Positions 7,406 through 46,943 of a stretch of 64,000 nucleotides of DNA are shown one piece after another. The translations under genes and the position numbers were made by a program. The stretch spans positions 1 to 64,000 of the IMG/VR virus record IMGVR_UViG_3300023257_000007. The stretch is one strand, 5' to 3'. Within the stretch, counting starts at the first letter, position 1. Each line of letters starts with the position of its first letter. The notes beneath the pieces were generated by a model that searched no databases, was not told the origin of the DNA, and saw only the letters and a list, made by a program, of their open reading frames with translations.

Positions 7406-7642
7406 ATGAAAAAACAAAAAACATTTACAATTGATATGGATATTTGGGAAAAATTTAATGAAATAAGCAAACAAAAATCTATCAATAAATCTTTATTAAT
7501 AGAAAATCATTTAAGAGATATCATTTATTTAAACGAAAACCCAAAACATTTTATTATCGTTGGAGATGAAATAAAATTATTAAAATATTCATTAAATGAA
7601 AATGAAATTTATATATTAGACGCAAAACCAAATATAAAATAA
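7406..7642 (+). CDS. Ribbon-helix-helix DNA-binding protein
   Basis: MKKQKTFTID...WEKFNEISKQKSINKSLLIE pattern; TAATG overlap with the next gene. Confidence 0.65.
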   Translation: MKKQKTFTIDMDIWEKFNEISKQKSINKSLLIENHLRDIIYLNENPKHFIIVGDEIKLLKYSLNENEIYILDAKPNIK

Positions 7643-9219
7643 TGATATTAACCAAATCAGTCAAAGTTAAAGTGCATTCATCTATGGTAAAATACTATCA
7701 GAGTAAAGGATATGAATGCAAATATAAAGATATAATTGATATTAAAGTAAAAGATCTAAAACAAAAAAGTACAGTAATTGTCGAAGTTGAATGTGATATA
7801 TGTGGTGAAAAGAAAAATATACCATTGTTTAGATATAACAACAATTTTAATAATAAAAATATGTATGTTTGTTCAGCTTCTTGCGCACAAACAAAAATAA
7901 AATTAACTAAATTAGAAAATCATGGAGATGAAAATTTTTCAAATATTAAAAAACGAAAAGAAACATGCAAAGAAAGATACAACAACGAAAATTATAAGAA
8001 TATTGAAAAAAAGAAAGAGACAAATATAGAAAGATATGGAGTTGAACACGTGATAATGAATGAAAATATAAAAAATAAAAGACTAGAAACATATAAAAAA
8101 TTATATGGTGAAGAGCACCCAATGAAAAATAATGATATAATTCTAAAGAAAAAACAAACATCTAAAAATAAACATGGTGATAAAAATTATAACAACATAC
8201 AAAAAACACTCAAAACAATTAAAAATAAACAACTTCAAAATATTGAAAAATATAATATTAAAGCTATCAATTATCAAGATTTTCTTTTTGAAGTTGAATG
8301 TGATAAAGGACACAATTATAAAATATCATTCGATTTATTATACAAAAGACATAAATATAATGTAGAAAAATGTACAATATGTAATCCTATTGGAATCAAA
8401 TATTCAAATAGTGAGTATAATTTATTACAATTCATTAAAGAAAATTATAATGGTGAAATAATAAAAAATTCAAGAAAAATAATAAAACCGTATGAATTAG
8501 ACATATTTTTACCAAATTTAAATTTAGCATTTGAATATAATGGATTATGGTGGCACAATGAATTATATAAAGATAAAAATTATCACAAAACTAAAAGTGA
8601 TTTATGTGATAAAAATAATATACAATTAATACATATATGGGAAGATAACTGGATTTATAAACAAGATATAGTTAAATCTATGATATTAAATAAATTAGGT
8701 AAAACACTAAATAAAATATATGCAAGAAAATGTGAAATTAGAGAAATTAAAAATAATGATTTAATAAAACAATTTTTAAACAATAATCATATACAAGGTT
8801 TTGTTGGTTCGAGTGTAAAATTGGGTTTATATTACAATAATGAATTAACTTCTTTAATGACTTTTAAAAAAGATAATAATAATTTTGAATTAAACAGATT
8901 TTGTAATAAGTTAAATACTAATGTTATTGGTGGTGCATCTAAATTATTTAAATACTTTACTAAAAATTATAACTTTTATGAAATAAAAACATTTGCAGAT
9001 AGAACTTATTCAAATGGAAACTTATATTTTAAGATGAATTTTAAAATAGGTAAATTTATAAAACCAGATTATTATTATATTGTTAATGGTATTAGAAAAC
9101 ATAAATTTAATTTTAGAAAACAAAAAGATAACATAAAAACAGAACATGAAATTATGTTAGAAAAAAATATTTATAGAATATATGACGCAGGTAAATATAG
9201 ATTTACCTACTCATTATAA
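7642..9219 (+). CDS. Hef-like free-standing homing endonuclease
   Basis: CxxC ribbons, ERYGVE repeats, ELDIFLP..LAFEYNGLWWH nuclease motif, conserved GGASKLF C-domain. Confidence 0.8.
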   Translation: MILTKSVKVKVHSSMVKYYQSKGYECKYKDIIDIKVKDLKQKSTVIVEVECDICGEKKNIPLFRYNNNFNNKNMYVCSASCAQTKIKLTKLENHGDENFSNIKKRKETCKERYNNENYKNIEKKKETNIERYGVEHVIMNENIKNKRLETYKKLYGEEHPMKNNDIILKKKQTSKNKHGDKNYNNIQKTLKTIKNKQLQNIEKYNIKAINYQDFLFEVECDKGHNYKISFDLLYKRHKYNVEKCTICNPIGIKYSNSEYNLLQFIKENYNGEIIKNSRKIIKPYELDIFLPNLNLAFEYNGLWWHNELYKDKNYHKTKSDLCDKNNIQLIHIWEDNWIYKQDIVKSMILNKLGKTLNKIYARKCEIREIKNNDLIKQFLNNNHIQGFVGSSVKLGLYYNNELTSLMTFKKDNNNFELNRFCNKLNTNVIGGASKLFKYFTKNYNFYEIKTFADRTYSNGNLYFKMNFKIGKFIKPDYYYIVNGIRKHKFNFRKQKDNIKTEHEIMLEKNIYRIYDAGKYRFTYSL

Positions 9220-10104: not shown

Positions 10105-11751
10105 ATGTTATTAACAAAGAATATTAAAATTAAAATAAATAATAGGTATATAAAATATTATCAAAATCTTGGATATCAGGTAAAAGGCGGTCAAGAATGT
10201 GAAATAAAAATAGAAGATTTATCAAAAAAAAGCCACGCTTTTGTTGATGTTAAATGTGATATATGTCAAGAAGAAAAAACAATTAAATATTATAATTATA
10301 CTGAAAATATACTAAATCAGGGTTTTTACACTTGTAAAAAATGTAAACATCATAAGACAAAAATCACAAATCTAGAGAAATATGGTGTAGAATGTACATT
10401 ACAATCTGATGATGTTTTAGAAAAGATAAAAAATAAAAACATAGAAAAATTTGGCACAGACCATTATTCAAAAACAAATGAATTTAAAGAAAAAATAAAA
10501 GAGACAAATCTAGAAAAATATGGTGTTGAAAGTAATATGCAATCAATCGAATTTAAGGAAAAATCTATATTATTTAATCTGAAAAGTTACGGTGTTGATC
10601 ATTATTCAAAGACTAATGAATTTAAAGAAAAAGTAAAAAAAACAAATTTAGAAAAATATGGTGTTGATCATTATTCAAAAACTGATGAATTCAAGGAGAA
10701 GTTGTCTAAAAACCATTTTTTAAAACTTAAAAAAGAAAACAACAATCTTAAAGAGATAAATGGTGATGAATATGTGATATATTGTGATAAATGTGATAAA
10801 GATTATACTATTCATAAATGGTTATATAAAAATAGAAAAAAGAAATATAAAACTAATACTTGTTTATATTGTAATCCTATAAATTCTTCTAAATCTGGAA
10901 TGGAATTAAAATTATTAGAATTTATAAAAGATAATTATAATGAAAAAATTGTTTATGGTAATAGAAAAATTATACCACCTAAAGAATTAGATATTTATTT
11001 ACCAAATTTAAAATTGGCATTTGAGTTTAATGGTGTATATTGGCACAACGAATTAAACAAACATAACAAATATCATTTAGAAAAAACAGAAAAATGTCTA
11101 GAAAAAGGAATACAATTAATTCATGTTTTTGAAGATGATTGGATTTATAAACAAGATATAGTAAAATCTAGAATTTTGAATTTAATTGGAAAATCTAAAA
11201 AAATATTTGCTCGAAAATGTGAAATTAAATTAGTCAATGATAATAAAGTTATTAGAAATTTTCTAGATGAAAATCATTTACAAGGGTTTGTAGGGAGCAA
11301 AATAAAATTGGGTTTGTATTATAATGATGAATTAGTAAGTTTAATGACTTTTGGAAATTTGAGAAAACCTTTAAATCAGTCAAAAAAGGATGGGTCATTT
11401 GAATTATTAAGATTTTGTAATAAATTGAGCATTTATGTTATTGGTGGTGCTTCAAAATTATTTAATTATTTCTTAAAAAACTATGAAATTTGTGAAATAA
11501 TAAGTTATGCGGATAGAAGTTGGAGTAATGGAAATTTATATGAAAAACTTGGTTTTGAATTTATACATAAAACACAACCTAACTATTATTATATAATAGG
11601 CAATCTTAGAAAACATAGATTTAATTTCAGGAAAGATAAATTAATTAAAGAAGGTTTTGATTCAAATAAAACCGAACATGAAATAATGTTAGAAAGGGAA
11701 ATATATCGAATATATGATAGCGGTAGTTTAAAATATAGTTATTTAATATAA
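10105..11751 (+). CDS. Hef-like free-standing homing endonuclease
   Basis: Paralog of 7642; KTNLEKYGV repeats; ELDIYLPNLKLAFEFNGVYWH. Confidence 0.8.
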   Translation: MLLTKNIKIKINNRYIKYYQNLGYQVKGGQECEIKIEDLSKKSHAFVDVKCDICQEEKTIKYYNYTENILNQGFYTCKKCKHHKTKITNLEKYGVECTLQSDDVLEKIKNKNIEKFGTDHYSKTNEFKEKIKETNLEKYGVESNMQSIEFKEKSILFNLKSYGVDHYSKTNEFKEKVKKTNLEKYGVDHYSKTDEFKEKLSKNHFLKLKKENNNLKEINGDEYVIYCDKCDKDYTIHKWLYKNRKKKYKTNTCLYCNPINSSKSGMELKLLEFIKDNYNEKIVYGNRKIIPPKELDIYLPNLKLAFEFNGVYWHNELNKHNKYHLEKTEKCLEKGIQLIHVFEDDWIYKQDIVKSRILNLIGKSKKIFARKCEIKLVNDNKVIRNFLDENHLQGFVGSKIKLGLYYNDELVSLMTFGNLRKPLNQSKKDGSFELLRFCNKLSIYVIGGASKLFNYFLKNYEICEIISYADRSWSNGNLYEKLGFEFIHKTQPNYYYIIGNLRKHRFNFRKDKLIKEGFDSNKTEHEIMLEREIYRIYDSGSLKYSYLI

Positions 11752-14692: not shown

Positions 14693-16504
14693 TTAATTCT
14701 TAAAAATGTATTTATAATTACCACTATTATATATTCTATAAATACCTCTTTCTATCATTATTTGATGTTCACTTTTATCTAAATCAAAACCTTCTTTAAC
14801 CAACACGTCTTTTCTATATCCAAACCTATATTTTCTCACACCATCTACTACATAATAATAATTTGGTTTAGAAATATGAGATAATTCAAAACCTAAATTT
14901 TCATATAATTTGCCATTTGAATGTGATCTATCTGCATAACTTATTATTTTTTTAAAAAAATAATTTTTAGTAAAATGTTTAAACAATTTTGAAGCACCAC
15001 CAATAACATTAGTATTTAACTTATTACAAAATCTTATAAGTTCAAATTCACCTTCTACACTAGAAGAATTTTGAGACTTTCTTTTTTTACCAAAAGTCAT
15101 TAAAGAAACTAACTCATTTTCATAATAAAGACCTAGTTTAATACTAGAACCAACAAAACCTTGTAAATGATTATCATCTAGAAATTTTCTTATCAATTTA
15201 TTATCTTCAATAACTTTAATTTCACATTTTCTTGCATAAATTCTATTTGGTGTTTTACCTATTTTGTTTAATATTATGGATTTAACTATGTCTTGTTTAT
15301 ACAACCAATCATCTTCCCAAATATGTGTTAGCTGAACACCTTTTTTAAAACAATTATCTGTTTTATTTAAATGATAATTATTATCTTTATTTAATTCGTT
15401 ATGCCAATACAAACCATTAAATTCAAAAGCTAATTTCAAATTTGGTAAATAAATATCTAATTCTAATGGTTTAATAACATCTCTATCTGATGTTTCAATG
15501 ACACCAGTATAATTTTCTTCAATAAAACTTAATAATTGTATTTCTAATCCTGATGTGTGTTGATTAATTGGGTTGCAAATAGTACACAATTCAGTTTTAC
15601 ATTTAACTCTATTTGAAAACAAGGATGAATTAATAATATAATCATGTCCTTTATCACATAATATTGTATATTCTTTATTATCAAAATCAATATTCAAAAA
15701 ATTTAAATAACTATAATTACTTAAAAGATATTTTTTAGTTCTTTTTCTATTATTCTCTTTAATATTTTTTATAACTTTTTCTGTTTGAAAATAATTTTCA
15801 ACACCATATCTTTCTAAGATTGTAGTTTTTCTTTTTTCTTTTAATTCATTAGAATATGATGGATTTTCAACACCATAATTTTCCATTAATGATTTTATTG
15901 ATTTCTCTCTAATTTCTTCTGATTGTTGAGGATACTCTACACCATACTTTTCTAAATTTGTTTTTTTAATTTTATCTTTTATTTCTTCTGATTCAAACGG
16001 ATTTTCAACACCATATTTTTCTAGATTTGTTTTGGATATTTTATCACGTATCTCTTTATTAGATAGAGAAAATTCAACACCATACTTTTCTAGATTTGTT
16101 TGTTTTTGCTTTCTTTTTACACACTCATTTTGAGTAAAATGTTCGACACCATATTTTTCCAAACTTGTTTTTTTAACTCTATCAACATATTCCTCAGTCT
16201 GTGTATAATATTCACTGCCATATTTTTCAAATGTTGTCTTTTTAACTTTTTCTTGAGCACACTTAGAACTACAAGCATAAAACCCACCATTATTAATATT
16301 TTTAACATATTTTTGATACATTAAATCCTTTTCATTATTACAAAAATCACATTTTACTTTTATTTTTACATGACTACCATCAGATAAATATTTAGGATGT
16401 ATATTTAAAATATCTCCCAATTGTACATCTTTCGAATATTCTTCTTTTAGTTTACTTAAATTTCTTTTTGTTACTTTAATTAATGTTTTTTCTGTTAAAA
16501 TCAT
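14693..16504 (-). CDS. Hef-like free-standing homing endonuclease
   Basis: Paralog of 7642/10105 with more KTNLEKYGVE repeats. Confidence 0.8.
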   Translation of the reverse strand: MILTEKTLIKVTKRNLSKLKEEYSKDVQLGDILNIHPKYLSDGSHVKIKVKCDFCNNEKDLMYQKYVKNINNGGFYACSSKCAQEKVKKTTFEKYGSEYYTQTEEYVDRVKKTSLEKYGVEHFTQNECVKRKQKQTNLEKYGVEFSLSNKEIRDKISKTNLEKYGVENPFESEEIKDKIKKTNLEKYGVEYPQQSEEIREKSIKSLMENYGVENPSYSNELKEKRKTTILERYGVENYFQTEKVIKNIKENNRKRTKKYLLSNYSYLNFLNIDFDNKEYTILCDKGHDYIINSSLFSNRVKCKTELCTICNPINQHTSGLEIQLLSFIEENYTGVIETSDRDVIKPLELDIYLPNLKLAFEFNGLYWHNELNKDNNYHLNKTDNCFKKGVQLTHIWEDDWLYKQDIVKSIILNKIGKTPNRIYARKCEIKVIEDNKLIRKFLDDNHLQGFVGSSIKLGLYYENELVSLMTFGKKRKSQNSSSVEGEFELIRFCNKLNTNVIGGASKLFKHFTKNYFFKKIISYADRSHSNGKLYENLGFELSHISKPNYYYVVDGVRKYRFGYRKDVLVKEGFDLDKSEHQIMIERGIYRIYNSGNYKYIFKN

Positions 16505-25730: not shown

Positions 25731-26060
25731 ATGAAATTCTTTTACCTAATATTACTATTTTTACTATCCCTCACAATTTCCGCACAAAAAATTTACAAAG
25801 TTGATTATAAATATGATGCAGATATAAAAGTATATGTTGCTGATTATAAATATGATGCAGATTTGATTGTTTATATCGTAGATTATAAATATGATGCAAA
25901 TAAAGATGGTTTATGGTATTTCGTAAATTATAAATATGATGCAGATAAGACAATTTATTTTGTAGATTATAAATACGATGCAAATTTAATAATTTACTTC
26001 TGTGATTATAAGTATGATGTAGGTTGGAAAAATAAATCTAAAATACATTTATTAAGATAA
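25731..26060 (+). CDS. Secreted repeat protein (DUF6150-like)
   Basis: Signal peptide followed by six YKYDA[D/N] repeats. Confidence 0.7.
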   Translation: MKFFYLILLFLLSLTISAQKIYKVDYKYDADIKVYVADYKYDADLIVYIVDYKYDANKDGLWYFVNYKYDADKTIYFVDYKYDANLIIYFCDYKYDVGWKNKSKIHLLR

Positions 26061-26072
26061 ATATATAATTTA

Positions 26073-26276
26073 ATGAAATGGGATAAATTTATTGATGATA
26101 CTTTCCAACTTAAAGAATGGGATTATATAGATCCTAAAATAATAAATTACATTAAAGATAATTTTTTGACACTTAATAAAGATAATGTTAAAAAGTTACA
26201 TCTTCCCAAAAAATTAACACACCATATTTCAATTAGATTAGAATATTTAGAAGAATTTTCTAATATTAGACCTTAA
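26073..26276 (+). CDS. Hypothetical protein
   Basis: ORF track; co-directional with neighbours. Confidence 0.5.
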   Translation: MKWDKFIDDTFQLKEWDYIDPKIINYIKDNFLTLNKDNVKKLHLPKKLTHHISIRLEYLEEFSNIRP

Positions 26277-26651
26277 TTAATATTCTCAAAGAATTCTTTA
26301 ACAGGTAATAATATATAACGTGTGCGCGCGCATGCGTATATAAAAAAATTTTTCAAAAGATTAAAATTTTTAAAAATTTTATTTCATTAATATTATCTTT
26401 AACGGTAATACTTATTTTCCTAAGAATAAAGAATTTTCAACTTATTGAATTTTTTAGTATAATTAGTATAATCTTTTAATTTTAGAAAAAAGTGACTTTT
26501 TAAGTCAAATATATAATTTTCACACTTTTATAAATTTTTAAAATTTTTAAACTTTTTAAAATTTTGAAAGTACAAGAAAATAGATTACGAAAAAATAATA
26601 TTTTTTTAAAGATTTTTCGAAATCAAAACGTTCTTTAAAATATTGTAAAAT

Positions 26652-27895
26652 ATAGTCTGTGCTTGGGCAGACGTTCATCTTCGGATGGAGCAGATAAAAC
26701 ATCGTAAGGTGTCGAAAGAGAGGAAGGTCACTTATTCTCGCCAATAGTCTTCGGATTATGGTCAATCTAAGCAAGTCTCATTTTTGTCTTGACCAACAAG
26801 ACAGCCTCAATAGAAAGGGGATAAGATGAAACAACGTGAGTAACGATCTTTGGTAAGAATAAGATGGCTCAATTGCCCGCAAGGGGAACAAAAGTTATCA
26901 AATATAGAATGGGGACATTCCAATATCGTTTAATCCACTCATTAAGTGTTCGTTGATAGATAAGAGATAGAATAGTAGTTCGAATGTGGAAAGTTAGAGC
27001 ATTATTCAGTTTCAAAGGTGTTGAAAGATGTCTTAACAAACGGCACAGTAAGTCCTCCGGGCTGAAACGCATACGAAGGGTCGTATTTTGTAAGGTGAAA
27101 CTTATGAATCGGTGGACAGGCACTTTGTGGTGATATCATTTTTTATTAGCTCACAATGGTAGAGCAGTAGTATTCTAACTAAAGGTAGATGGTTCAATTC
27201 CATCATAAAAAAAGCAAAGTCCCTGTCCGTCTGTTAAGTAAAGGTGCTTAAAACTTTACACTTCGGTGAATAAAGTGGATTCAAAGCTCGCAAGGTAGAG
27301 AATCTTTGATACAGTAGCCTCAACTTTTAACCCTAGCAGGTTATTAACGCCACGATAGTGGTGAGTGTACGCAAAATATCGAGTAACTTAATAGTACTAG
27401 TGATGTAACCACATAAAAAGTTACAGTACAGCTGGTGTACATAGTTGCCTTTCGAGGGATTATGTGGACAATTCAGGAACGAAGAATAGCAACTCTTTGA
27501 TAATCTGAAGAAAGCAAAACATATAATAAACTGTGTGTTTTACCAGTATGACAGTTTTTAGTCTCAAAATTGTTTCTCTATCAAGATAAAAACCTTGACG
27601 TGGTGATAGAGCTTTAAACTAATATTTATCAAATGTGAAAAAAGTAGTAGAAATTAAAAGACGCAACACGCAGCCCGTTCTCTGCGCTACTTCACAAAAA
27701 TGTGAACGATAAAAATCTTCACATTTAAATACACCAAGAATAACACCATCACTGTAGCCCTAAAGGAGTGATGTTGTCGCATAAAAACGATTAGTGTTAG
27801 TGTGTGTTTGAGAAGACGACGGGGGATTTCACAAAAGTAACATGAATCAAGTAGTGTGAAATAAGAAATTCCTCCAAGTTTTCTCGGAAAATTTT
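26652..27895 (+). ncRNA. Giant structured non-coding RNA (GOLLD/ROOL-like), ~1.25 kb; boundaries approximate
   Basis: No plus-strand ORF, GC clearly above flanks. UUCG hairpins at 26674, 26744, 27259, 27448; GNRA hairpins at 26699, 26876; embedded tRNA-like domain; abuts a tRNA array. Confidence 0.75.
27140..27212 (+). tRNA. tRNA-like domain embedded in the giant RNA (degenerate anticodon arm)
   Basis: TTTTTAT/ATAAAAA acceptor, GCTC/GAGC D-stem, GATGG-TTCAATT-CCATC T-arm, 6-nt anticodon loop. Confidence 0.65.
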
Positions 27896-27975
27896 TTTAT
27901 GCAAGAAATAATTTGTATATTGTCAAAAATAGAGAATAAATATTTAATATATAAAAAATAGTAAAAACAGAAACA

Positions 27976-28062
27976 ATGAATAATACTTTTAAACATAATA
28001 GTTCATCTTTTCATAAGTGGTTTAGCCGCTTCGGATCGGGAATGTTATGCCTTAAAAGTTAA
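27976..28062 (+). CDS. Leader peptide 1 (28 aa, Phe/His/Trp-rich)
   Basis: MNNTFKHNSSSFHKWFSRFGSGMLCLKS*, downstream of TAATATATA at 27945 and upstream of a terminator. Confidence 0.7.
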   Translation: MNNTFKHNSSSFHKWFSRFGSGMLCLKS

Positions 28063-28091
28063 GATTAAAAAATATTAATCAACAAAGGGAC

Positions 28092-28129
28092 AAACTCGAT
28101 TCTAACAAGATTCGGGTTTTTTGTTTTTT
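28092..28129 (+). terminator. Attenuator terminator upstream of tRNA-His/Trp/Phe
   Basis: AAACTCGATTCT / AGATTCGGGTTT stem plus U-tract. Confidence 0.78.
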
Positions 28130-28151
28130 ATAAACGTTCTTAAAAATATAT

Positions 28152-28227
28152 GGTGGTTATAGTGTTAGTGGTAGCACGGCAGGTTGTGGTTCTGTTAGGA
28201 TGGATTCAAATTCCATTAATCACCCCA
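28152..28227 (+). tRNA. tRNA-His(GUG)
   Basis: Cloverleaf; GCAGG-TTGTGGT-TCTGT; C73. Confidence 0.88.
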
Positions 28228-28237
28228 AATTTAACAC

Positions 28238-28308
28238 AGGTCTATAGTGTAACGGTAGCATAAGTGATTCCAAACCACTTGGTCCGGGTTCAAATCCTGG
28301 TAGGCCTG
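28238..28308 (+). tRNA. tRNA-Trp(CCA)
   Basis: Cloverleaf; loop TTCCAAA; T-loop TTCAAAT. Confidence 0.9.
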
Positions 28309-28377
28309 CGAGAAGTTTAAATATGGTTAAATGAAGGATGGTTAAAAGGTAGAAAAATGAAATATTAATACAAATTT

Positions 28378-28450
28378 GGAACCGTGGTGTAGGTGGTCTG
28401 CACGATACTCTGAAGAAGTATAGGTACCCGTTCAACTCGGGTCGGTTCCA
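28378..28450 (+). tRNA. tRNA-Phe(GAA)
   Basis: GGAACCG/CGGTTCC acceptor; ATACT-CTGAAGA-AGTAT. Confidence 0.88.
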
Positions 28451-28527
28451 CTTTAAACTTTTAAATTTTAATATATATTAATGTGAAGAAAGAACCAGTT
28501 TTAATGAAAAATAATAAAAATTAACAA

Positions 28528-29274
28528 ATGAAAAAATATACACAATTTAGTAAATCTTTAGAAAAAATCAATCAAAATATGGAATTATTTGAAAAAGCTA
28601 TCGATCAAAATCAAAAAGAAAAAATAGATAGATATATTAATGCAAACAATTACAAAAAAGTTCTATCAGAACTAAAACAAATTATTTTTAATTTAAAAAA
28701 AGAAATTAAAAATTCCAATTTTGATGATTTCATTTATAAACAGAACAATAAAGATATAGAAATAATATATAATCCGACTATTCGTGGTATTTTAACCTAT
28801 TTAGATGGTAAAAGAGTAGAATTTGAATATGGAAAAGAAGAGAATCAACAAAAAATCTTAAACACTATCTATATTGATGGTGAAAGAGACCCATTTTTAG
28901 ATATAACTATTCAACCACCATTTAATCAGATACATATTAATAATGGTTTGCCAGTTTTTATGAAAGGTCTAGGATTAGGTAAAAAAGTTTACAAAAAACT
29001 AATTAAAGATTTTGGTTATCTTTCTTCTTTTAAAGGAATAAAACCTTCTATTGAAAGTGATTTGGTTTGGGATACTTTAGCTGATGATAGAGAATTGTTC
29101 ACTTTTGTGAATGATAACAATATCATTTGTTTTTGGAATGAAGTAGATTATGATATTATAATTATTAAATTGAAAGAATTTTACAAAATAAAAGGACAAA
29201 AAATCTTTGATAACGATTTTAAAAAGTTATATAACTTAACTGATGAAAAAATAGAACAAATAATTAATATATAA
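28528..29274 (+). CDS. Hypothetical protein, possible GNAT-like fold, CTS-like N-terminus
   Basis: MKKYTQF start; KGLGLGKKVY resembles the acetyl-CoA loop. Confidence 0.45.
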   Translation: MKKYTQFSKSLEKINQNMELFEKAIDQNQKEKIDRYINANNYKKVLSELKQIIFNLKKEIKNSNFDDFIYKQNNKDIEIIYNPTIRGILTYLDGKRVEFEYGKEENQQKILNTIYIDGERDPFLDITIQPPFNQIHINNGLPVFMKGLGLGKKVYKKLIKDFGYLSSFKGIKPSIESDLVWDTLADDRELFTFVNDNNIICFWNEVDYDIIIIKLKEFYKIKGQKIFDNDFKKLYNLTDEKIEQIINI

Positions 29275-29292
29275 AGAAAATCAATTTTAAAC

Positions 29293-29541
29293 ATGAAAAT
29301 TAAAAGATATAATGAATCATTAATTGATAATGATAATAACACTAGAGAAGATTTCAATGAAGAAATTGATGATCTAATATCAGAATTAAAGATAAGATAT
29401 AATAATTTTAATAATTTAATTGATTCATACAAAATAATAGAAAAAAGTAAAACAGAAGAATGGGAAAAAGTTAGAAATGAACTAAGAGGCGCATTTGATG
29501 GTTTTAAAAATGAATTAATACAAAAAATTAAAAAATTTTAA
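29293..29541 (+). CDS. Hypothetical protein, CTS-like N-terminus
   Basis: MKIKRYNES. Confidence 0.7.
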   Translation: MKIKRYNESLIDNDNNTREDFNEEIDDLISELKIRYNNFNNLIDSYKIIEKSKTEEWEKVRNELRGAFDGFKNELIQKIKKF

Positions 29542-29544
29542 ATA

Positions 29545-29619
29545 ATGATTATAATTAACATAAATAGTAAATCGAAAAAGAATAGTCGTCTGAAAACGGC
29601 TCGGAATTGTATTACCTAA
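29545..29619 (+). CDS. Leader peptide 2 (24 aa, Ser/Lys control codons)
   Basis: MIIININSKSKKNSRLKTARNCIT*, overlapping alternative hairpins. Confidence 0.68.
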   Translation: MIIININSKSKKNSRLKTARNCIT

Positions 29620-29641
29620 ATTTTTAGGTACAAAGAATTAC

Positions 29642-29671
29642 AAACCGAGTCTGAAAAGATTCGGTTTTTTT
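29642..29671 (+). terminator. Attenuator terminator upstream of tRNA-Lys/Ser array
   Basis: AAACCGAGTC-TGAAAA-GATTCGGTTT plus T-tract, ending 3 nt before tRNA-Lys. Confidence 0.85.
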
Positions 29672-29673
29672 AT

Positions 29674-29751
29674 TGGCCATTAGCTCAGTAGGTTTAGAGC
29701 ATCTGCCTTTTAAGCAGAGAGTCCAGGGTTCGATCCCCTGATGGCCAACCA
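29674..29751 (+). tRNA. tRNA-Lys(UUU), CCA encoded
   Basis: Perfect cloverleaf; TCTGC-CTTTTAA-GCAGA. Confidence 0.95.
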
Positions 29752-29753
29752 AT

Positions 29754-29826
29754 GGATCTGTAGCTCAGTTGGTAGAGCTTCTGCCTTTTAAGCAGAAAGT
29801 CCAGGGTTCGAGTCCGACTAGGTCCA
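29754..29826 (+). tRNA. tRNA-Lys(UUU) second copy with mispaired T-stem (possible pseudogene)
   Basis: Same anticodon arm; T-stem CAGGG vs CCGAC pairs at only 2 of 5 positions. Confidence 0.65.
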
Positions 29827-29830
29827 CTAA

Positions 29831-29945
29831 GGCTTATAACAAATAGGTTGTATTTATAGAGCATTTGTCGGGTTACCGCATGTCACTAAAATGTATATTT
29901 TAAGAGTTACTAGAGATATATGAGGTTCGAATCCTTAATAAGCCA
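29831..29945 (+). pseudogene. Elongated tRNA-like element
   Basis: GGCTTAT/ATAAGCC acceptor and TGAGG-TTCGAAT-CCTTA T-arm around an oversized, non-canonical core. Confidence 0.5.
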
Positions 29946-29949
29946 CTAT

Positions 29950-30033
29950 GGAAAGCGTCCGGTTGGACGAGGGGCTACTCTTGAAAAGTAGTAATGGGTT
30001 ACACCATTAGGGGTTCGAATCCCTTGCTTTCCG
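29950..30033 (+). tRNA. tRNA-Ser(UGA)
   Basis: CTACT-CTTGAAA-AGTAG; long variable arm; G73. Confidence 0.92.
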
Positions 30034-30037
30034 CTAT

Positions 30038-30125
30038 GGAAGAGTACCCAAGTTGGTGAAGGGGCTGGTTTGCTAAACCAGTAGGTCTGAAATACGGCGC
30101 GTGGGTTCGAGCCCCACTTCTTCCG
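30038..30125 (+). tRNA. tRNA-Ser(GCU)
   Basis: CTGGT-TTGCTAA-ACCAG; long variable arm; G73. Confidence 0.92.
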
Positions 30126-30173
30126 CAATTAGGTTTGAAACTCAGTTGGTGACCTACTAAGAAAGATATTTCA

Positions 30174-30356
30174 TTAAACTTCTTGCCAATGGTTAACACC
30201 ATTTTTATCAGTTTGTATTTCCCACATATTACCATCATTACCTTTCATTCTAGTTCCTTCATCATGCCATGTTGCACTATCTGTAGGTCCTTTTCTACTT
30301 TCTGAATGTCTAACTGAAGCAGCACTTGCTTCTTTAAAAGTTTTTAAATGTTTCAT
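30174..30356 (-). CDS. Small protein, CTS-like N-terminus
   Basis: MKHLKTFKE. Confidence 0.7.
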   Translation of the reverse strand: MKHLKTFKEASAASVRHSESRKGPTDSATWHDEGTRMKGNDGNMWEIQTDKNGVNHWQEV

Positions 30357-30357
30357 A

Positions 30358-30606
30358 TTATTTAGTCATATATTTTATACCATGTTTTCGTAGTTTTTTA
30401 ACTACTTTGTCATAGTTCACTTCATTTTCATATCCGTATAATATATCCGGGATGAGATCGTCAAGGTGTTCTTCAACCTCTGAAAGAAGTTTAGCACCAG
30501 AATAATCATGTCTCATGTCATAATATACGTCATCTAAAAATTCTTCAAGTTCTATTTTCATATCACTTAATTTAAGTGATTCATTAAAAGTTTTTAAATG
30601 TCTCAT
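30358..30606 (-). CDS. Small protein, CTS-like N-terminus
   Basis: MRHLKTFNES. Confidence 0.7.
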   Translation of the reverse strand: MRHLKTFNESLKLSDMKIELEEFLDDVYYDMRHDYSGAKLLSEVEEHLDDLIPDILYGYENEVNYDKVVKKLRKHGIKYMTK

Positions 30607-32510: not shown

Positions 32511-33818
32511 ATGAGAAATATACAAAAATTATCAGAAAAAGAATTAATAGTACATTTAAAATCTATCTATAATAAACAGATAGATATTTATGATAAATTT
32601 GAAAAAACAGGTGAAATTGAACCAATTATTACCGATTTTGATGATCAAGATGCATATAAATATTTTATGCAATATGCAATCTTTAAAACTCACCCAAACG
32701 CAATAGTAAAATTTAAATTTTTTAACCGTGGAAAACATAAATTTCCAGTCGGTTCAGATTATCATATTAAAAAACAAATAGAATCTATGAAAAATCTTAG
32801 ATTCACTCCTGAAATAGAAAGATCATTTAGAAAAAAATTTTCAAATATGAAAGGTGAATCTTATTTTGATGAATCTTTTTATGGTTTTTTAAGAAGTTAT
32901 AGATACGATCCATCTGAAGTTAAAGTAACTCAAACAGGAGAAGATATCGAAATAGAAATAACTGGTTCTTGGTTAAAAACAATTTATTGGGAAACACAAA
33001 TAATGCCGATTTTAACAGAAACTTGGTATATGTTAACTGATCAATATAAAAATATTCATAATTTTGATCATCTATATGATACACACAGAGACAAATATCG
33101 AAGTTTTATAACAGCCGAATCTAATATTGCAGAATTTGGTTTAAGAAGAAGATATTCAAAACTAATACAAGAATTTATCAATATACATTTTATGTGGGAA
33201 TCACCAGCTAGATATATTGGTACGTCTAATTGTATGTTCGCTAGAAAATTTAATGTTAAAGCCATTGGAACACAAGCTCATGAATGGATAATGTTTCATG
33301 CCGCAAAATATGGACCAGAACTAGCAAATAAGATATCTTTAGAAAATTGGGTTAAAGTTTACAGAGGAGAATTAGGTATTGCGTTATCTGATACTTATGG
33401 TACAGACAATTTCTTAAAATCATTTGATACTTTACATAGTAAATTATTTGATGGTGTTAGATGGGATTCTGGTGATTTTAAATTATTTACTGATAAAATA
33501 ATTGGACACTATAAATCATATGGAATTAATCCTAAATCCAAAACAATTGTCTATTCTGATGGTATAAATTCATTTTTAAAAATACGAGATATTATAAGAT
33601 ATGCAAGTGATAAAATTAAATGCACGTTAGGAATTGGTACTTATTTAACAAATGATATTGGTGTACCAACTATGAATATTGTTATTAAAATGACAGAAGC
33701 TAAACCTGAAAAAATGGATTGGAGATATTGTATAAAGACATCTGATTCATCTGGTAAATATACTTATACTGACAAAAAAACATTAAACAGATACTTAGAA
33801 GATTTGAATATAAATTAA
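32511..33818 (+). CDS. pncB: Nicotinate phosphoribosyltransferase
   Basis: TDFDDQDAYK, EFGLRRR, GTQAHEW, SDTY, GVRWDSGD, YSDG, GIGTYLTND. Confidence 0.92.
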   Translation: MRNIQKLSEKELIVHLKSIYNKQIDIYDKFEKTGEIEPIITDFDDQDAYKYFMQYAIFKTHPNAIVKFKFFNRGKHKFPVGSDYHIKKQIESMKNLRFTPEIERSFRKKFSNMKGESYFDESFYGFLRSYRYDPSEVKVTQTGEDIEIEITGSWLKTIYWETQIMPILTETWYMLTDQYKNIHNFDHLYDTHRDKYRSFITAESNIAEFGLRRRYSKLIQEFINIHFMWESPARYIGTSNCMFARKFNVKAIGTQAHEWIMFHAAKYGPELANKISLENWVKVYRGELGIALSDTYGTDNFLKSFDTLHSKLFDGVRWDSGDFKLFTDKIIGHYKSYGINPKSKTIVYSDGINSFLKIRDIIRYASDKIKCTLGIGTYLTNDIGVPTMNIVIKMTEAKPEKMDWRYCIKTSDSSGKYTYTDKKTLNRYLEDLNIN

Positions 33819-45341: not shown

Positions 45342-46943
45342 TTAAAAGTTTAATGAATATTTTATATTACCACTGTTATATATTCTATAAATACCTCTTT
45401 CTAACATTATTTCGTGTTCACTTTTATTAGGATCATAACCTTCTCTAACTAAAACATCTTTTCTAAAATTATACCTATATAATCGTTTTAAATTTTTACC
45501 ATCAAAATAATGATAATTCGGTTTTGTGTTATGAACGAATTTAAATTCCAATTTTTCATATAGATTTCCTTTACTCCAGCTTCTATCAGCATAAGTAATT
45601 ATTTCACCCGGATTATAATTTCTGATAAAATATTTAAATAATTTTGATGCACCACCAACAACATTAATATTTAATTTGTTACAAAACCTTAACAATTCAT
45701 ACTCTCCTTCTATACTTTTAGACCCCATTAATTTTCTTTTTTTACCAAAGGTCATTAGAGATACTAATTCATCTTCATAATAAAGACCTATTTTAACAAA
45801 AGAACCAACAAAACCTTGAAGATGATTATCATTTAAAAAATTTCTAATCAATTTATTATCTATTATCTCTTTAATTATAGTTTTTCTAGCATATATTTTA
45901 TCAGACTTTCCAATCATATTTAATATTCTAGACTTGACAATTTCTTTTTGGTTAAACCATTCATCTTCCCAAATATGTATTAATTGAACACCTTTTTTTA
46001 AACAATTGTTTGTTTTATTTAAATGATAATCCTTATCCTTATAAAGTTCTGAATGCCAATACAAACCATTAAATTCAAAAGCTAGATTTAAATCTGGTAA
46101 ATAAATATCTAATTCTTTTCCATCCAAGATCTCTTTATCACTTGTTATTATTTCATAATTATAGTTTTCTTTAATAAAATTCACGATTTCTAATTCTTTA
46201 CCTGAAATCTTATAATCTAATGTATTACAAACTGTGCATAATATTGTTTTTTGTATTTTATATCTTTGATATAAATTTTTGCTATTAATATTAAAATAAT
46301 GATCTTTACCACAATCACATTTAACATCTATCGTTCGATCAGTATTTAAAATATAATCTGTTATATTATATTCCGATAATTTAAATAATATATCTTTTTC
46401 CCACCTTTTATATGTTAACAAATAATATGATTCTGTTTGTGTATACCATTCTTTTCCATATTTTTCAAGATTAGTTTTCTTTATTTTCTCTCTAATTTCA
46501 TATGAAGAAAGTATCTCTTCCACGCCATATTTTTCAAGATTTGTTTTTTTAATTTTTTCTTTGACATCTTTATCTAATAATGTACAAGTAACGCCATATT
46601 TCTTGAGGTTTGTTTGTTTTGTTTTATCTTTTATTTCTTTTATGTGTTGTGGATTTTCAACGCCATATTTTTCTAACATTGTATTTTTTCTTTTAATAGA
46701 AGAACATTTTTTACAACTATAAAAACCTTGTCTTTTTTTATTTTCTAAATATTTATGATATCTTAGTTGTTTTTCATCTGAACATATCTCACAAACAGCA
46801 ATTACTTTAACATGTGAATTTTGTGGCAAATCATTAACATCAATGTCCAATGTTTCACCATTATTACAAACATAATTTTTAGATCTATAATATGTTACAT
46901 TACGATATGTTATATTAACATCAATTCTACTATTTTTAATCAT
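45342..46943 (-). CDS. Hef-like free-standing homing endonuclease
   Basis: Fourth paralog; ELDIYLPDLNLAFEFNGLYWH. Confidence 0.8.
   Translation of the reverse strand: MIKNSRIDVNITYRNVTYYRSKNYVCNNGETLDIDVNDLPQNSHVKVIAVCEICSDEKQLRYHKYLENKKRQGFYSCKKCSSIKRKNTMLEKYGVENPQHIKEIKDKTKQTNLKKYGVTCTLLDKDVKEKIKKTNLEKYGVEEILSSYEIREKIKKTNLEKYGKEWYTQTESYYLLTYKRWEKDILFKLSEYNITDYILNTDRTIDVKCDCGKDHYFNINSKNLYQRYKIQKTILCTVCNTLDYKISGKELEIVNFIKENYNYEIITSDKEILDGKELDIYLPDLNLAFEFNGLYWHSELYKDKDYHLNKTNNCLKKGVQLIHIWEDEWFNQKEIVKSRILNMIGKSDKIYARKTIIKEIIDNKLIRNFLNDNHLQGFVGSFVKIGLYYEDELVSLMTFGKKRKLMGSKSIEGEYELLRFCNKLNINVVGGASKLFKYFIRNYNPGEIITYADRSWSKGNLYEKLEFKFVHNTKPNYHYFDGKNLKRLYRYNFRKDVLVREGYDPNKSEHEIMLERGIYRIYNSGNIKYSLNF

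Follow-up and report, generated by a model that had tools for sequence, protein, structure and literature searches.

Work on phage tRNA genes has centred on why they are carried, with compensation for codon usage and counter-defence as explanations, and to our knowledge it says little about how the arrays are controlled. A locus in IMGVR_UViG_3300023257_000007, an uncultured phage contig of ~348 kb, raises the question of whether transcription of such an array can depend on translation of the codons that its tRNAs serve. We analysed the first 64 kb of this contig (64,000 nucleotides (nt), hereafter the window), in which a short open reading frame (ORF) containing Phe, His and Trp codons is followed by an intrinsic terminator and by genes for tRNA-His, tRNA-Trp and tRNA-Phe. 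An earlier sequence-only reading had proposed that a codon-matched leader peptide, acting through a terminator/antiterminator switch, gates the matching tRNAs. That central claim is supported by co-variation between leader codons and tRNA identity in related loci and by folding of the leader with the ribosome masked. We therefore consider it likely that the element is a ribosome-mediated transcription attenuator with tRNA genes as its regulated genes, a conclusion whose support is wholly computational. Four of the five defining features of leader-peptide attenuators were found computationally: a leader ORF, a terminator, an antiterminator and cognate control codons. The fifth, dependence of readthrough on leader translation and charged-tRNA supply, is part of the circuit proposed below.

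Leader ORFs and predicted RNA switches in the window

The first leader ORF (leader 1; positions of all cassette features are given in Table 1) has 28 codons and, as previously described, contains four Phe, two His and one Trp codon, with F-H-K-W-F at codons 12-16. Phe, His and Trp make up 7 of 27 codons (binomial p=0.005 against the phage's own long ORFs and proteins), and of random window ORFs of 20-40 codons, 2.3-2.8% reached the same counts. The motif TAATATATA at 27945, pointed out in the sequence-only reading, is present and sits inside the longer TTTAATATATA. The window contains 14 exact copies of TTTAATATATA where 1.6 would be expected, and all of them lie 5-60 nt 5' of an ORF start in the correct orientation. 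This distribution makes a promoter role plausible for TTTAATATATA, which resembles the TAnnTTT(G/A) -7 boxes found upstream of related leaders; one relative, L171, has the same motif. A Shine-Dalgarno sequence is missing at the leader start and at the other displayed start sites that follow TTTAATATATA copies.

Downstream of the leader, the terminator and the tRNA-His, -Trp and -Phe genes all lie where they had been reported, with tRNA-His beginning 24 nt after the terminator. The terminator stem consists of 8 bp, a U.U mismatch and 3 bp closed by an AACA loop (-10.7 kcal/mol), and its 3' arm, AAGATTCGGGTTTTT, is common to a second terminator in the window and to the cassette family described below. 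A two-mismatch copy of the promoter-like motif at 28140-28150 was considered as a promoter between terminator and tRNA-His and rejected, because such copies occur at chance level in the window (391 against 354 expected). The tRNA genes were called with ARAGORN and Rfam, which agreed on tRNA-His, -Trp and -Phe.

Pairing between GGATCGGG, inside the leader ORF, and CTCGATTC (28095-28102) in the 5' arm of the terminator had been put forward as an antiterminator. This duplex has a predicted energy of -10.7 kcal/mol, a value equalled in 0.65% of dinucleotide shuffles and in 0.65% of random genomic windows (p=0.0065). The whole leader (27955-28135) is strongly structured (-39.4 kcal/mol, z=-4.68), and in the untranslated leader a long hairpin across the ORF is predicted to sequester the antiterminator strand, forming a 1:2, or anti-antiterminator, structure. 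A short C(UUCG)G hairpin at 28026-28039 had been suggested as the competitor of the antiterminator; it folds at only -2.1 kcal/mol, no better than shuffled sequences, and the long hairpin appears to be the real competitor.

The earlier reading had also asked how the leader folds with and without a ribosome. We masked the ribosome footprint, or folded only the RNA downstream of the ribosome, and computed the probability of the terminator, P(terminator). For leader 1 this was 0.99 in the free RNA, fell to ~0.1-0.5 when the A site lay within codons 8-16 (N-S-S-S-F-H-K-W-F), and was back at 0.99 from codon 17 to the stop. In this prediction, ribosome position selects the structure.

Another cassette in the window (cassette 2; 29545-29672) is built in the same way, and we propose that it controls the Lys/Lys/Ser/Ser array that follows it. 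Its leader ORF begins 3 nt past the stop of an 82-aa ORF (29293-29541), and its predicted antiterminator forms in a transcript that ends before the 3' arm of the terminator.

Table 1. Positions of the two cassettes and their tRNA genes in the window.
Feature	Position	Strand	Details
Promoter-like motif TTTAATATATA	27943-27953	+	22 nt 5' of leader ATG
Leader ORF 1	27976-28062	+	28 codons + stop; F5, H7, F12, H13, W15, F16, F19
Long hairpin across leader ORF 1 (predicted)	27985-28060	+	-19.7 kcal/mol, z=-3.46
Antiterminator strand GGATCGGG (predicted)	28033-28040	+	codons 20-22, inside leader ORF 1
Intrinsic terminator 1	28092-28129	+	stem-loop 28092-28119, then U-run to 28129
tRNA-His (GTG)	28153-28227	+	ARAGORN, Rfam
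tRNA-Trp (CCA)	28238-28309	+	ARAGORN, Rfam
tRNA-Phe (GAA)	28378-28451	+	ARAGORN, Rfam
Leader ORF 2	29545-29619	+	24 codons; S-K-S-K-K-N-S = codons 8-14
Antiterminator strand 2, GGCTCGG (predicted)	29598-29604	+	duplex with 29644-29650, -12.6 kcal/mol, p=0.0045
Intrinsic terminator 2	29642-29672	+	stem-loop 29642-29667 with 11-bp stem and GAAA loop; then U-run
tRNA array 2	29674-30126	+	Lys(TTT), Lys(TTT), odd tRNA-like element, Ser(TGA), Ser(GCT)

A cassette family in which leader codons vary with tRNA identity

Terminators 1 and 2 share the 3' arm AAGATTCGG(G/T)TTTTT. Scanning IMG/VR for this 15-mer returned 113 loci, about one third of them with a tRNA array directly downstream. With a stricter hairpin pattern, 57 of the 79 distinct hairpins on viral contigs had a tRNA array within 400 nt downstream, against 0 of 147 with a downstream tRNA when the identical pattern was applied to one genome per bacterial and archaeal species (Fisher p=1e-35). 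An ATG-initiated ORF of at least 17 codons stopped 24-37 nt 5' of the hairpin in 51 of 53 tRNA-linked instances. The first tRNA lay no more than 50 nt from the U-run in 23 of 57 arrays, a gap that we judged too short for a promoter, so these arrays should be expressible only by readthrough of the terminator. BLASTN of the region and of the leaders of three relatives against GenBank phages gave either tRNA matches or a short, weak match that we took as chance; by this search, no cultured phage in GenBank has a detectable cassette homologue. The cassettes of the window apparently belong to a widespread, modular family carried by uncultured phages.

The hosts of these phages are probably Bacteroidota. 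The Bacteroidota promoter consensus is TTG followed after ~19 nt by TAnnTTT(G/A), and motifs of this type lie upstream of many leaders, with an exact TAnnTTTG in at least 10. In addition, a homologue of a window protein adjoins a gene in which a type-9 secretion sorting domain is faintly recognisable. The assignment is based on these two observations.

Leader content differs between arrays of different composition. Two homologues of leader 1, L171 and L378 (...FKKHTFKFKWHFSH...), are rich in Phe, His, Trp and Lys and precede tRNA-Phe and tRNA-His. Arrays that begin with Tyr and Lys tRNAs have leaders of the type YYYGKKSYKK, and Thr/Cys/Asn/Ile/Ser/Phe arrays have leaders rich in S, T, I, N, F and C. 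Long arrays led by Ser, Gln and Pro tRNAs have leaders ending in ...FTYNNEPKQ or ...YKQPRY right before the antiterminator strand, and peptides are well conserved within this group. Its members (for example L035, L037, L114 and L127) also carry, between terminator and first tRNA, another promoter-like element of Bacteroidota type; a conserved box, GTTCATTGACATATTGGATAA, immediately precedes the first tRNA, and variants of the box precede Cys and Gln tRNAs in other groups. Taken together, the amino acids served by family arrays include Gln, Pro, Ser, Thr, Cys, Asn, Ile, Phe, Trp, His, Asp and Gly, and cassettes for Lys and Tyr are common.

The sequence-only reading had suggested comparing leader codons with downstream anticodons across related arrays against a permuted null. 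When we permuted tRNA arrays among leader clusters, the correspondence between leader codons and tRNAs proved significant, and the result was later replicated in independent contigs (see below). With 20 leader clusters the test gave z=4.8 (p<=5e-6), and with 15 conservative groups p=7e-5; it persisted without the window's two leaders (p ~0.002) and without the Tyr/Lys group (p ~5e-4 to 2e-3). The signal came only from the 10 codons immediately 5' of the antiterminator strand (matched 0.52, permuted 0.35; z=5.6, p<=1e-5); elsewhere in the leader there was none (z=0.69). This is the placement that attenuation predicts. Comparing the codon family used for Ser (TCN or AGY) with the Ser anticodons present was uninformative.

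Three controls address base composition. Matched residues were richer in the leader than in the long ORFs of the same locus in 16 of 16 leaders (Wilcoxon p=1.5e-5). On one phage contig there are two cassettes whose leaders differ and match, respectively, a Tyr/Lys array and a Cys/Asn/Ile/Ser/Phe/Gly array; the phage of the window likewise has two cassettes with different leaders and different arrays. Together with the restriction of the signal to one part of the leader, these observations argue against a simple base-composition effect.

For replication the same hairpin was sought separately in metagenome contigs, and 22 tRNA-linked instances were found. The permutation test on 12 loci gave z=4.6 (p<=1e-5), and seven previously unseen leader types alone gave p=0.007. 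Among the new types are leaders with QQQQQ before two tRNA-Gln genes, one before tRNA-Lys with 6 Lys in 21 codons, and Asp/Gly-rich leaders before Asp and Gly tRNAs. The cleanest family member, L318 (4069-4186; metagenome contig Ga0116179_1013797), has a leader of 17 codons, five of them an unbroken run of Gln, followed by the hairpin and by two tRNA-Gln genes that begin 5 nt after the U-run.

The predicted RNA switch also recurs across the family. In 14 of 20 representatives a strand complementary to the terminator 5' arm lies within the 3' part of the ORF at p<0.05 (Fisher 4e-16). Variants of the central dinucleotide of the 5' arm (AT, GA, AG, TA and AA) are matched by complementary changes in the antiterminator strand, which the search pattern, fixed at the 3' arm of the hairpin, had left unconstrained. 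In alignment A4, which misaligns L171 and L378 at the antiterminator strand, leader 1 shares with the Tyr/Lys leaders a 3' scaffold made up of the antiterminator strand, then a AATGTTATG..AAAA block, and the terminator, whereas the block of control codons differs; the leader 1 strand GGATCGGG aligns with GAATCGGG of the Tyr/Lys leaders. Ribosome-masked folding of a Tyr/Lys leader gave a P(terminator) of 0.98 in the free RNA, 0.01-0.03 at K11-K16 and 0.99 after codon 18, and a Phe/Trp leader switched similarly. From these comparisons it appears that the scaffold of ORF start, antiterminator strand and terminator is kept while the control codons are re-coded to suit the tRNAs that follow.

A proposed attenuation circuit and its alternatives

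We propose the following circuit for leader 1. Transcription would start at the promoter-like motif and run into the leader ORF. A ribosome reading quickly would cover or pass the antiterminator strand and the terminator would form; in an untranslated leader the long hairpin would hide the same strand, again with termination as the outcome. In either state little transcript would reach tRNA-His, -Trp and -Phe. If charged tRNAs were scarce, the ribosome would stall at the Phe, His and Trp codons (around codons 8-16) and leave the antiterminator strand free to pair with the terminator 5' arm, so that RNA polymerase would read through and the tRNAs would be made. These products would relieve the stall, which would close a negative-feedback loop on decoding capacity. 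We infer each of these steps, from translation of the leader to feedback of the tRNAs on the stall. The trigger may be loss of host tRNAs to an anticodon nuclease, as the sequence-only reading proposed, or else supply-and-demand feedback or infection timing.

Several points weigh against this circuit. The codon content of leader 1 is by itself a modest match, suggestive at an empirical p of ~0.025. The same leader also contains nine Lys and Ser codons, and its critical window is rich in Ser and Lys, the amino acids of the neighbouring array 2, a correspondence that may or may not be meaningful. The Lys/Ser content of leader 2 is not significant alone (p ~0.07-0.1), and across loci the whole-leader enrichment is modest (1.0-3.2-fold). 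In the co-variation test, tRNA identities are ARAGORN anticodon calls and the leader clusters may be only partly independent in evolutionary terms. At equilibrium, terminator 2 wins whatever the ribosome position, as do the terminators of L048, L171 and L317, so cassette 2 and these members need a kinetic argument; one family member favours the antiterminator. Because several members, leader 2 included, favour the terminator in all states, we rejected equilibrium folding as a universal test. Finally, the promoter-like element after the terminator in the Ser/Gln/Pro group means that the attenuator may control only part of the output there, adding to a basal promoter and not acting as the only gate.

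The alternative that fares best concerns the purpose of the attenuator and not its mechanism, and can coexist with the circuit above: the attenuator would mainly detect tRNA destruction, by anticodon nucleases or by defences that deplete tRNAs, and supply replacement tRNAs only then. As inferred from folding, the circuit would respond to any loss of a cognate charged tRNA, and the frequency of Lys and Tyr cassettes fits this idea, tRNA-Lys being a classic anticodon-nuclease target. Against it, arrays reach 18 tRNAs in the stretches read and together cover nearly all twenty amino acids, which is broader than known nuclease targets, so a general decoding supply fits better. We regard a dedicated counter-defence role as unlikely. 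Similarly tentative is the wider idea that each leader is a miniature test message for the codons of its array, serving the phage as a combined counter-defence and decoding sensor; nucleases, tRNA-depleting defence, shut-off or starvation would then stall the ribosome, replacement tRNAs would be made and the system would switch off again.

A different possibility is that the ORF and terminator form a self-contained unit, an independent small gene for a micro-protein or a terminated small RNA that merely neighbours the arrays, with the tRNAs arising from constitutive, leaky readthrough or their own promoters and the codon resemblance having another cause. The promoter-like element and the well-conserved peptides of the Ser/Gln/Pro group would suit such a unit, as would terminators that always win at equilibrium. 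Across groups, however, the conserved peptide stretch that could be traced to a cause falls on the RNA-constrained antiterminator strand, and only the 10 codons ahead of that strand co-vary with tRNA identity. A unit independent of the tRNAs also sits poorly with the many short gaps between U-run and first tRNA, and with a hairpin that never adjoins tRNAs in the bacterial genomes scanned. We consider this explanation improbable.

Still harder to sustain is an RNA-only switch, in which a ligand, a protein or an uncharged tRNA (as in a T-box) binds the leader directly and the ORF is incidental. The strong structure of the leader and its significant alternative pairings are what such a switch would show. 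Yet the leaders have no match to the T-box or any other Rfam family (at thresholds of E<=1 for the window and E<=0.1 for ten relatives), the ORF keeps its fixed stop-to-hairpin distance in nearly all cassettes despite sequence divergence, and it is amino-acid composition, not a single specifier codon, that tracks the tRNAs; we think this switch very unlikely. That an AT-rich intergenic ORF of 28 codons merely happened to contain some Phe, His and Trp codons before an ordinary terminator is scarcely credible, even with such counts in 2.3-2.8% of random small ORFs of the window, given two independent significant antiterminators in the window, homologous leaders elsewhere and replicated family-wide statistics.

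Genomic setting, known attenuators and implications

The window has a GC content of ~24%, and a second copy of its phage is IMGVR_UViG_3300022868_000009. Three scans for relatives through neighbouring proteins (a 248-aa ORF, the nicotinate phosphoribosyltransferase and a 398-aa ORF) retrieved only the same phage, on two IMG/VR contigs that are identical over 27900-28480. More distant homologues of the 248-aa protein (28528-29274) were found at loci without tRNAs and so offered no usable synteny; three of them (P0002, P0004 and P0006) are diverged, with 46-58% identity to the window protein. Each of these three has a longest contig of 3804 bp in ENA, which suggests that one contig may carry all three, perhaps as neighbouring paralogues. 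No Pfam family matched the 248-aa proteins, and elsewhere they show no association with tRNAs. Other proteins encoded in the window include a T4-type large terminase (50150-52477), the nicotinate phosphoribosyltransferase (32511-33818) and four paralogous large proteins with Pfam DUF7487 (7642-9219, 10105-11751, and 14693-16504 and 45342-46943 on the minus strand).

The window has several further RNA features, all on the plus strand. The spacer between tRNA-Trp and tRNA-Phe (28310-28377) is unusually long, at 68 nt, and has no Rfam match and no ORF listed at a 25-aa threshold. Between the second tRNA-Lys and the first tRNA-Ser lies a tRNA-like element (29830-29948) with good acceptor and T arms; ARAGORN reports it only when the threshold is relaxed, and then as tRNA-Tyr(GTA) containing an unusually placed 29-nt intron; there is no Rfam call. 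Unrecognised tRNA-like segments also lie between terminator and first tRNA in some family loci. Directly 5' of the first cassette is an ORF-poor stretch (26300-27970), most of which falls in an interval that is GC-richer than the window (26001-28000; 30% against 24%). Within this stretch, the Rfam GOLLD RNA model matches over its full length (27073-27541; 93.9 bits, E=2e-24, under the gathering score of 150), and the match encloses a tRNA with the anticodon CTA, of amber-suppressor type (27139-27213). A second CTA tRNA (55154-55226) directly follows a 164-aa ORF and is preceded by a hairpin (55131-55148; 8 bp, -12.2 kcal/mol, z=-4.5) without a U-run or leader ORF. Recoding of TAG is not evident, listed ORFs of at least 90 aa covering much of the window under the standard code.

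How does the proposed attenuator relate to known systems? Rfam returned only tRNA, tRNA-derived and GOLLD matches, with nothing over 27940-28135 or the relatives' leaders, and the T-box model (RF00230) had no match at E<=1 in 26000-30500 of the window or at E<=0.1 in ten related loci. In full-text literature, whose coverage leaves out many subscription-journal papers, we did not find leader-peptide control of tRNA genes or of phage tRNA arrays. The earlier statement that no such description was known for phage tRNA arrays thus holds in Rfam and in this literature.

The closest analogues are the trpL, hisL, pheL, thrL, leuL and ilvL/ivbL leaders of Proteobacteria. With these the phage cassette, as proposed, shares an ORF of control codons, a terminator, an antiterminator that competes for the terminator 5' arm, an upstream hairpin that hides the antiterminator without translation, and ribosome position as the deciding factor. 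The thr and ilv leaders carry mixed control codons; in the phage cassette mixed control codons are matched to the downstream tRNAs, and the antiterminator strand lies inside the ORF. Whereas trpL-type attenuators regulate enzymes, the phage-borne cassette would regulate tRNA genes, and we found no sequence or Rfam relationship between the two. Unlike that of the trpL type, the output of the cassette would directly supply the sensed molecule, and the loop would therefore be closed. The pheM leader of the E. coli pheST operon, which encodes Phe-tRNA synthetase, is a leader peptide that reports the level of charged tRNA and so controls a component of the translation apparatus; it differs in acting on a protein enzyme in a bacterium, in sensing a single amino acid and in having no sequence relation to the phage cassette.

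T-box riboswitches likewise sense tRNA status, switch between terminator and antiterminator and have translation-related genes downstream, but their contact with uncharged tRNA is direct, made by a specifier codon and the conserved T-box sequence, and involves no translation; the phage cassette has a conserved ORF instead and no T-box match. The Bacteroid-trp leader (RF01692) and other predicted Bacteroidota attenuators combine a leader peptide and a terminator without a Shine-Dalgarno sequence. They share this logic and the likely host phylum with the phage cassette, and differ in being bacterial and in lying upstream of tryptophan biosynthesis genes; none was among the Rfam matches in the leaders scanned. 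The tRNA arrays of the phage literature are the same object, clusters of tRNA genes seen as keeping translation going where host tRNAs fall short or have been destroyed, and in the full-text literature we found no regulatory leader described for them.

If the attenuator reading is true, the cassette would be a self-correcting controller of decoding capacity. As far as Rfam and the full-text literature show, it would also be the first case of attenuation in which the regulated product belongs to the very class of molecule being sensed. The family places different sets of control codons on one scaffold (Tyr/Lys, Gln, Lys, Asp/Gly, Phe/His/Trp, Thr/Cys/Asn/Ile/Ser and others), and such modular re-coding would amount to a natural experiment in attenuator evolution. 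The cassettes could also serve as compact parts for sensing tRNA supply in Bacteroidota. Leaders would give a sequence-only read-out of the codons that a phage treats as limiting and, should the sensor idea prove true, would show for each phage the host tRNAs that run short or come under attack in infection. Why phages carry these tRNAs would thereby become a question that can be tested experimentally.

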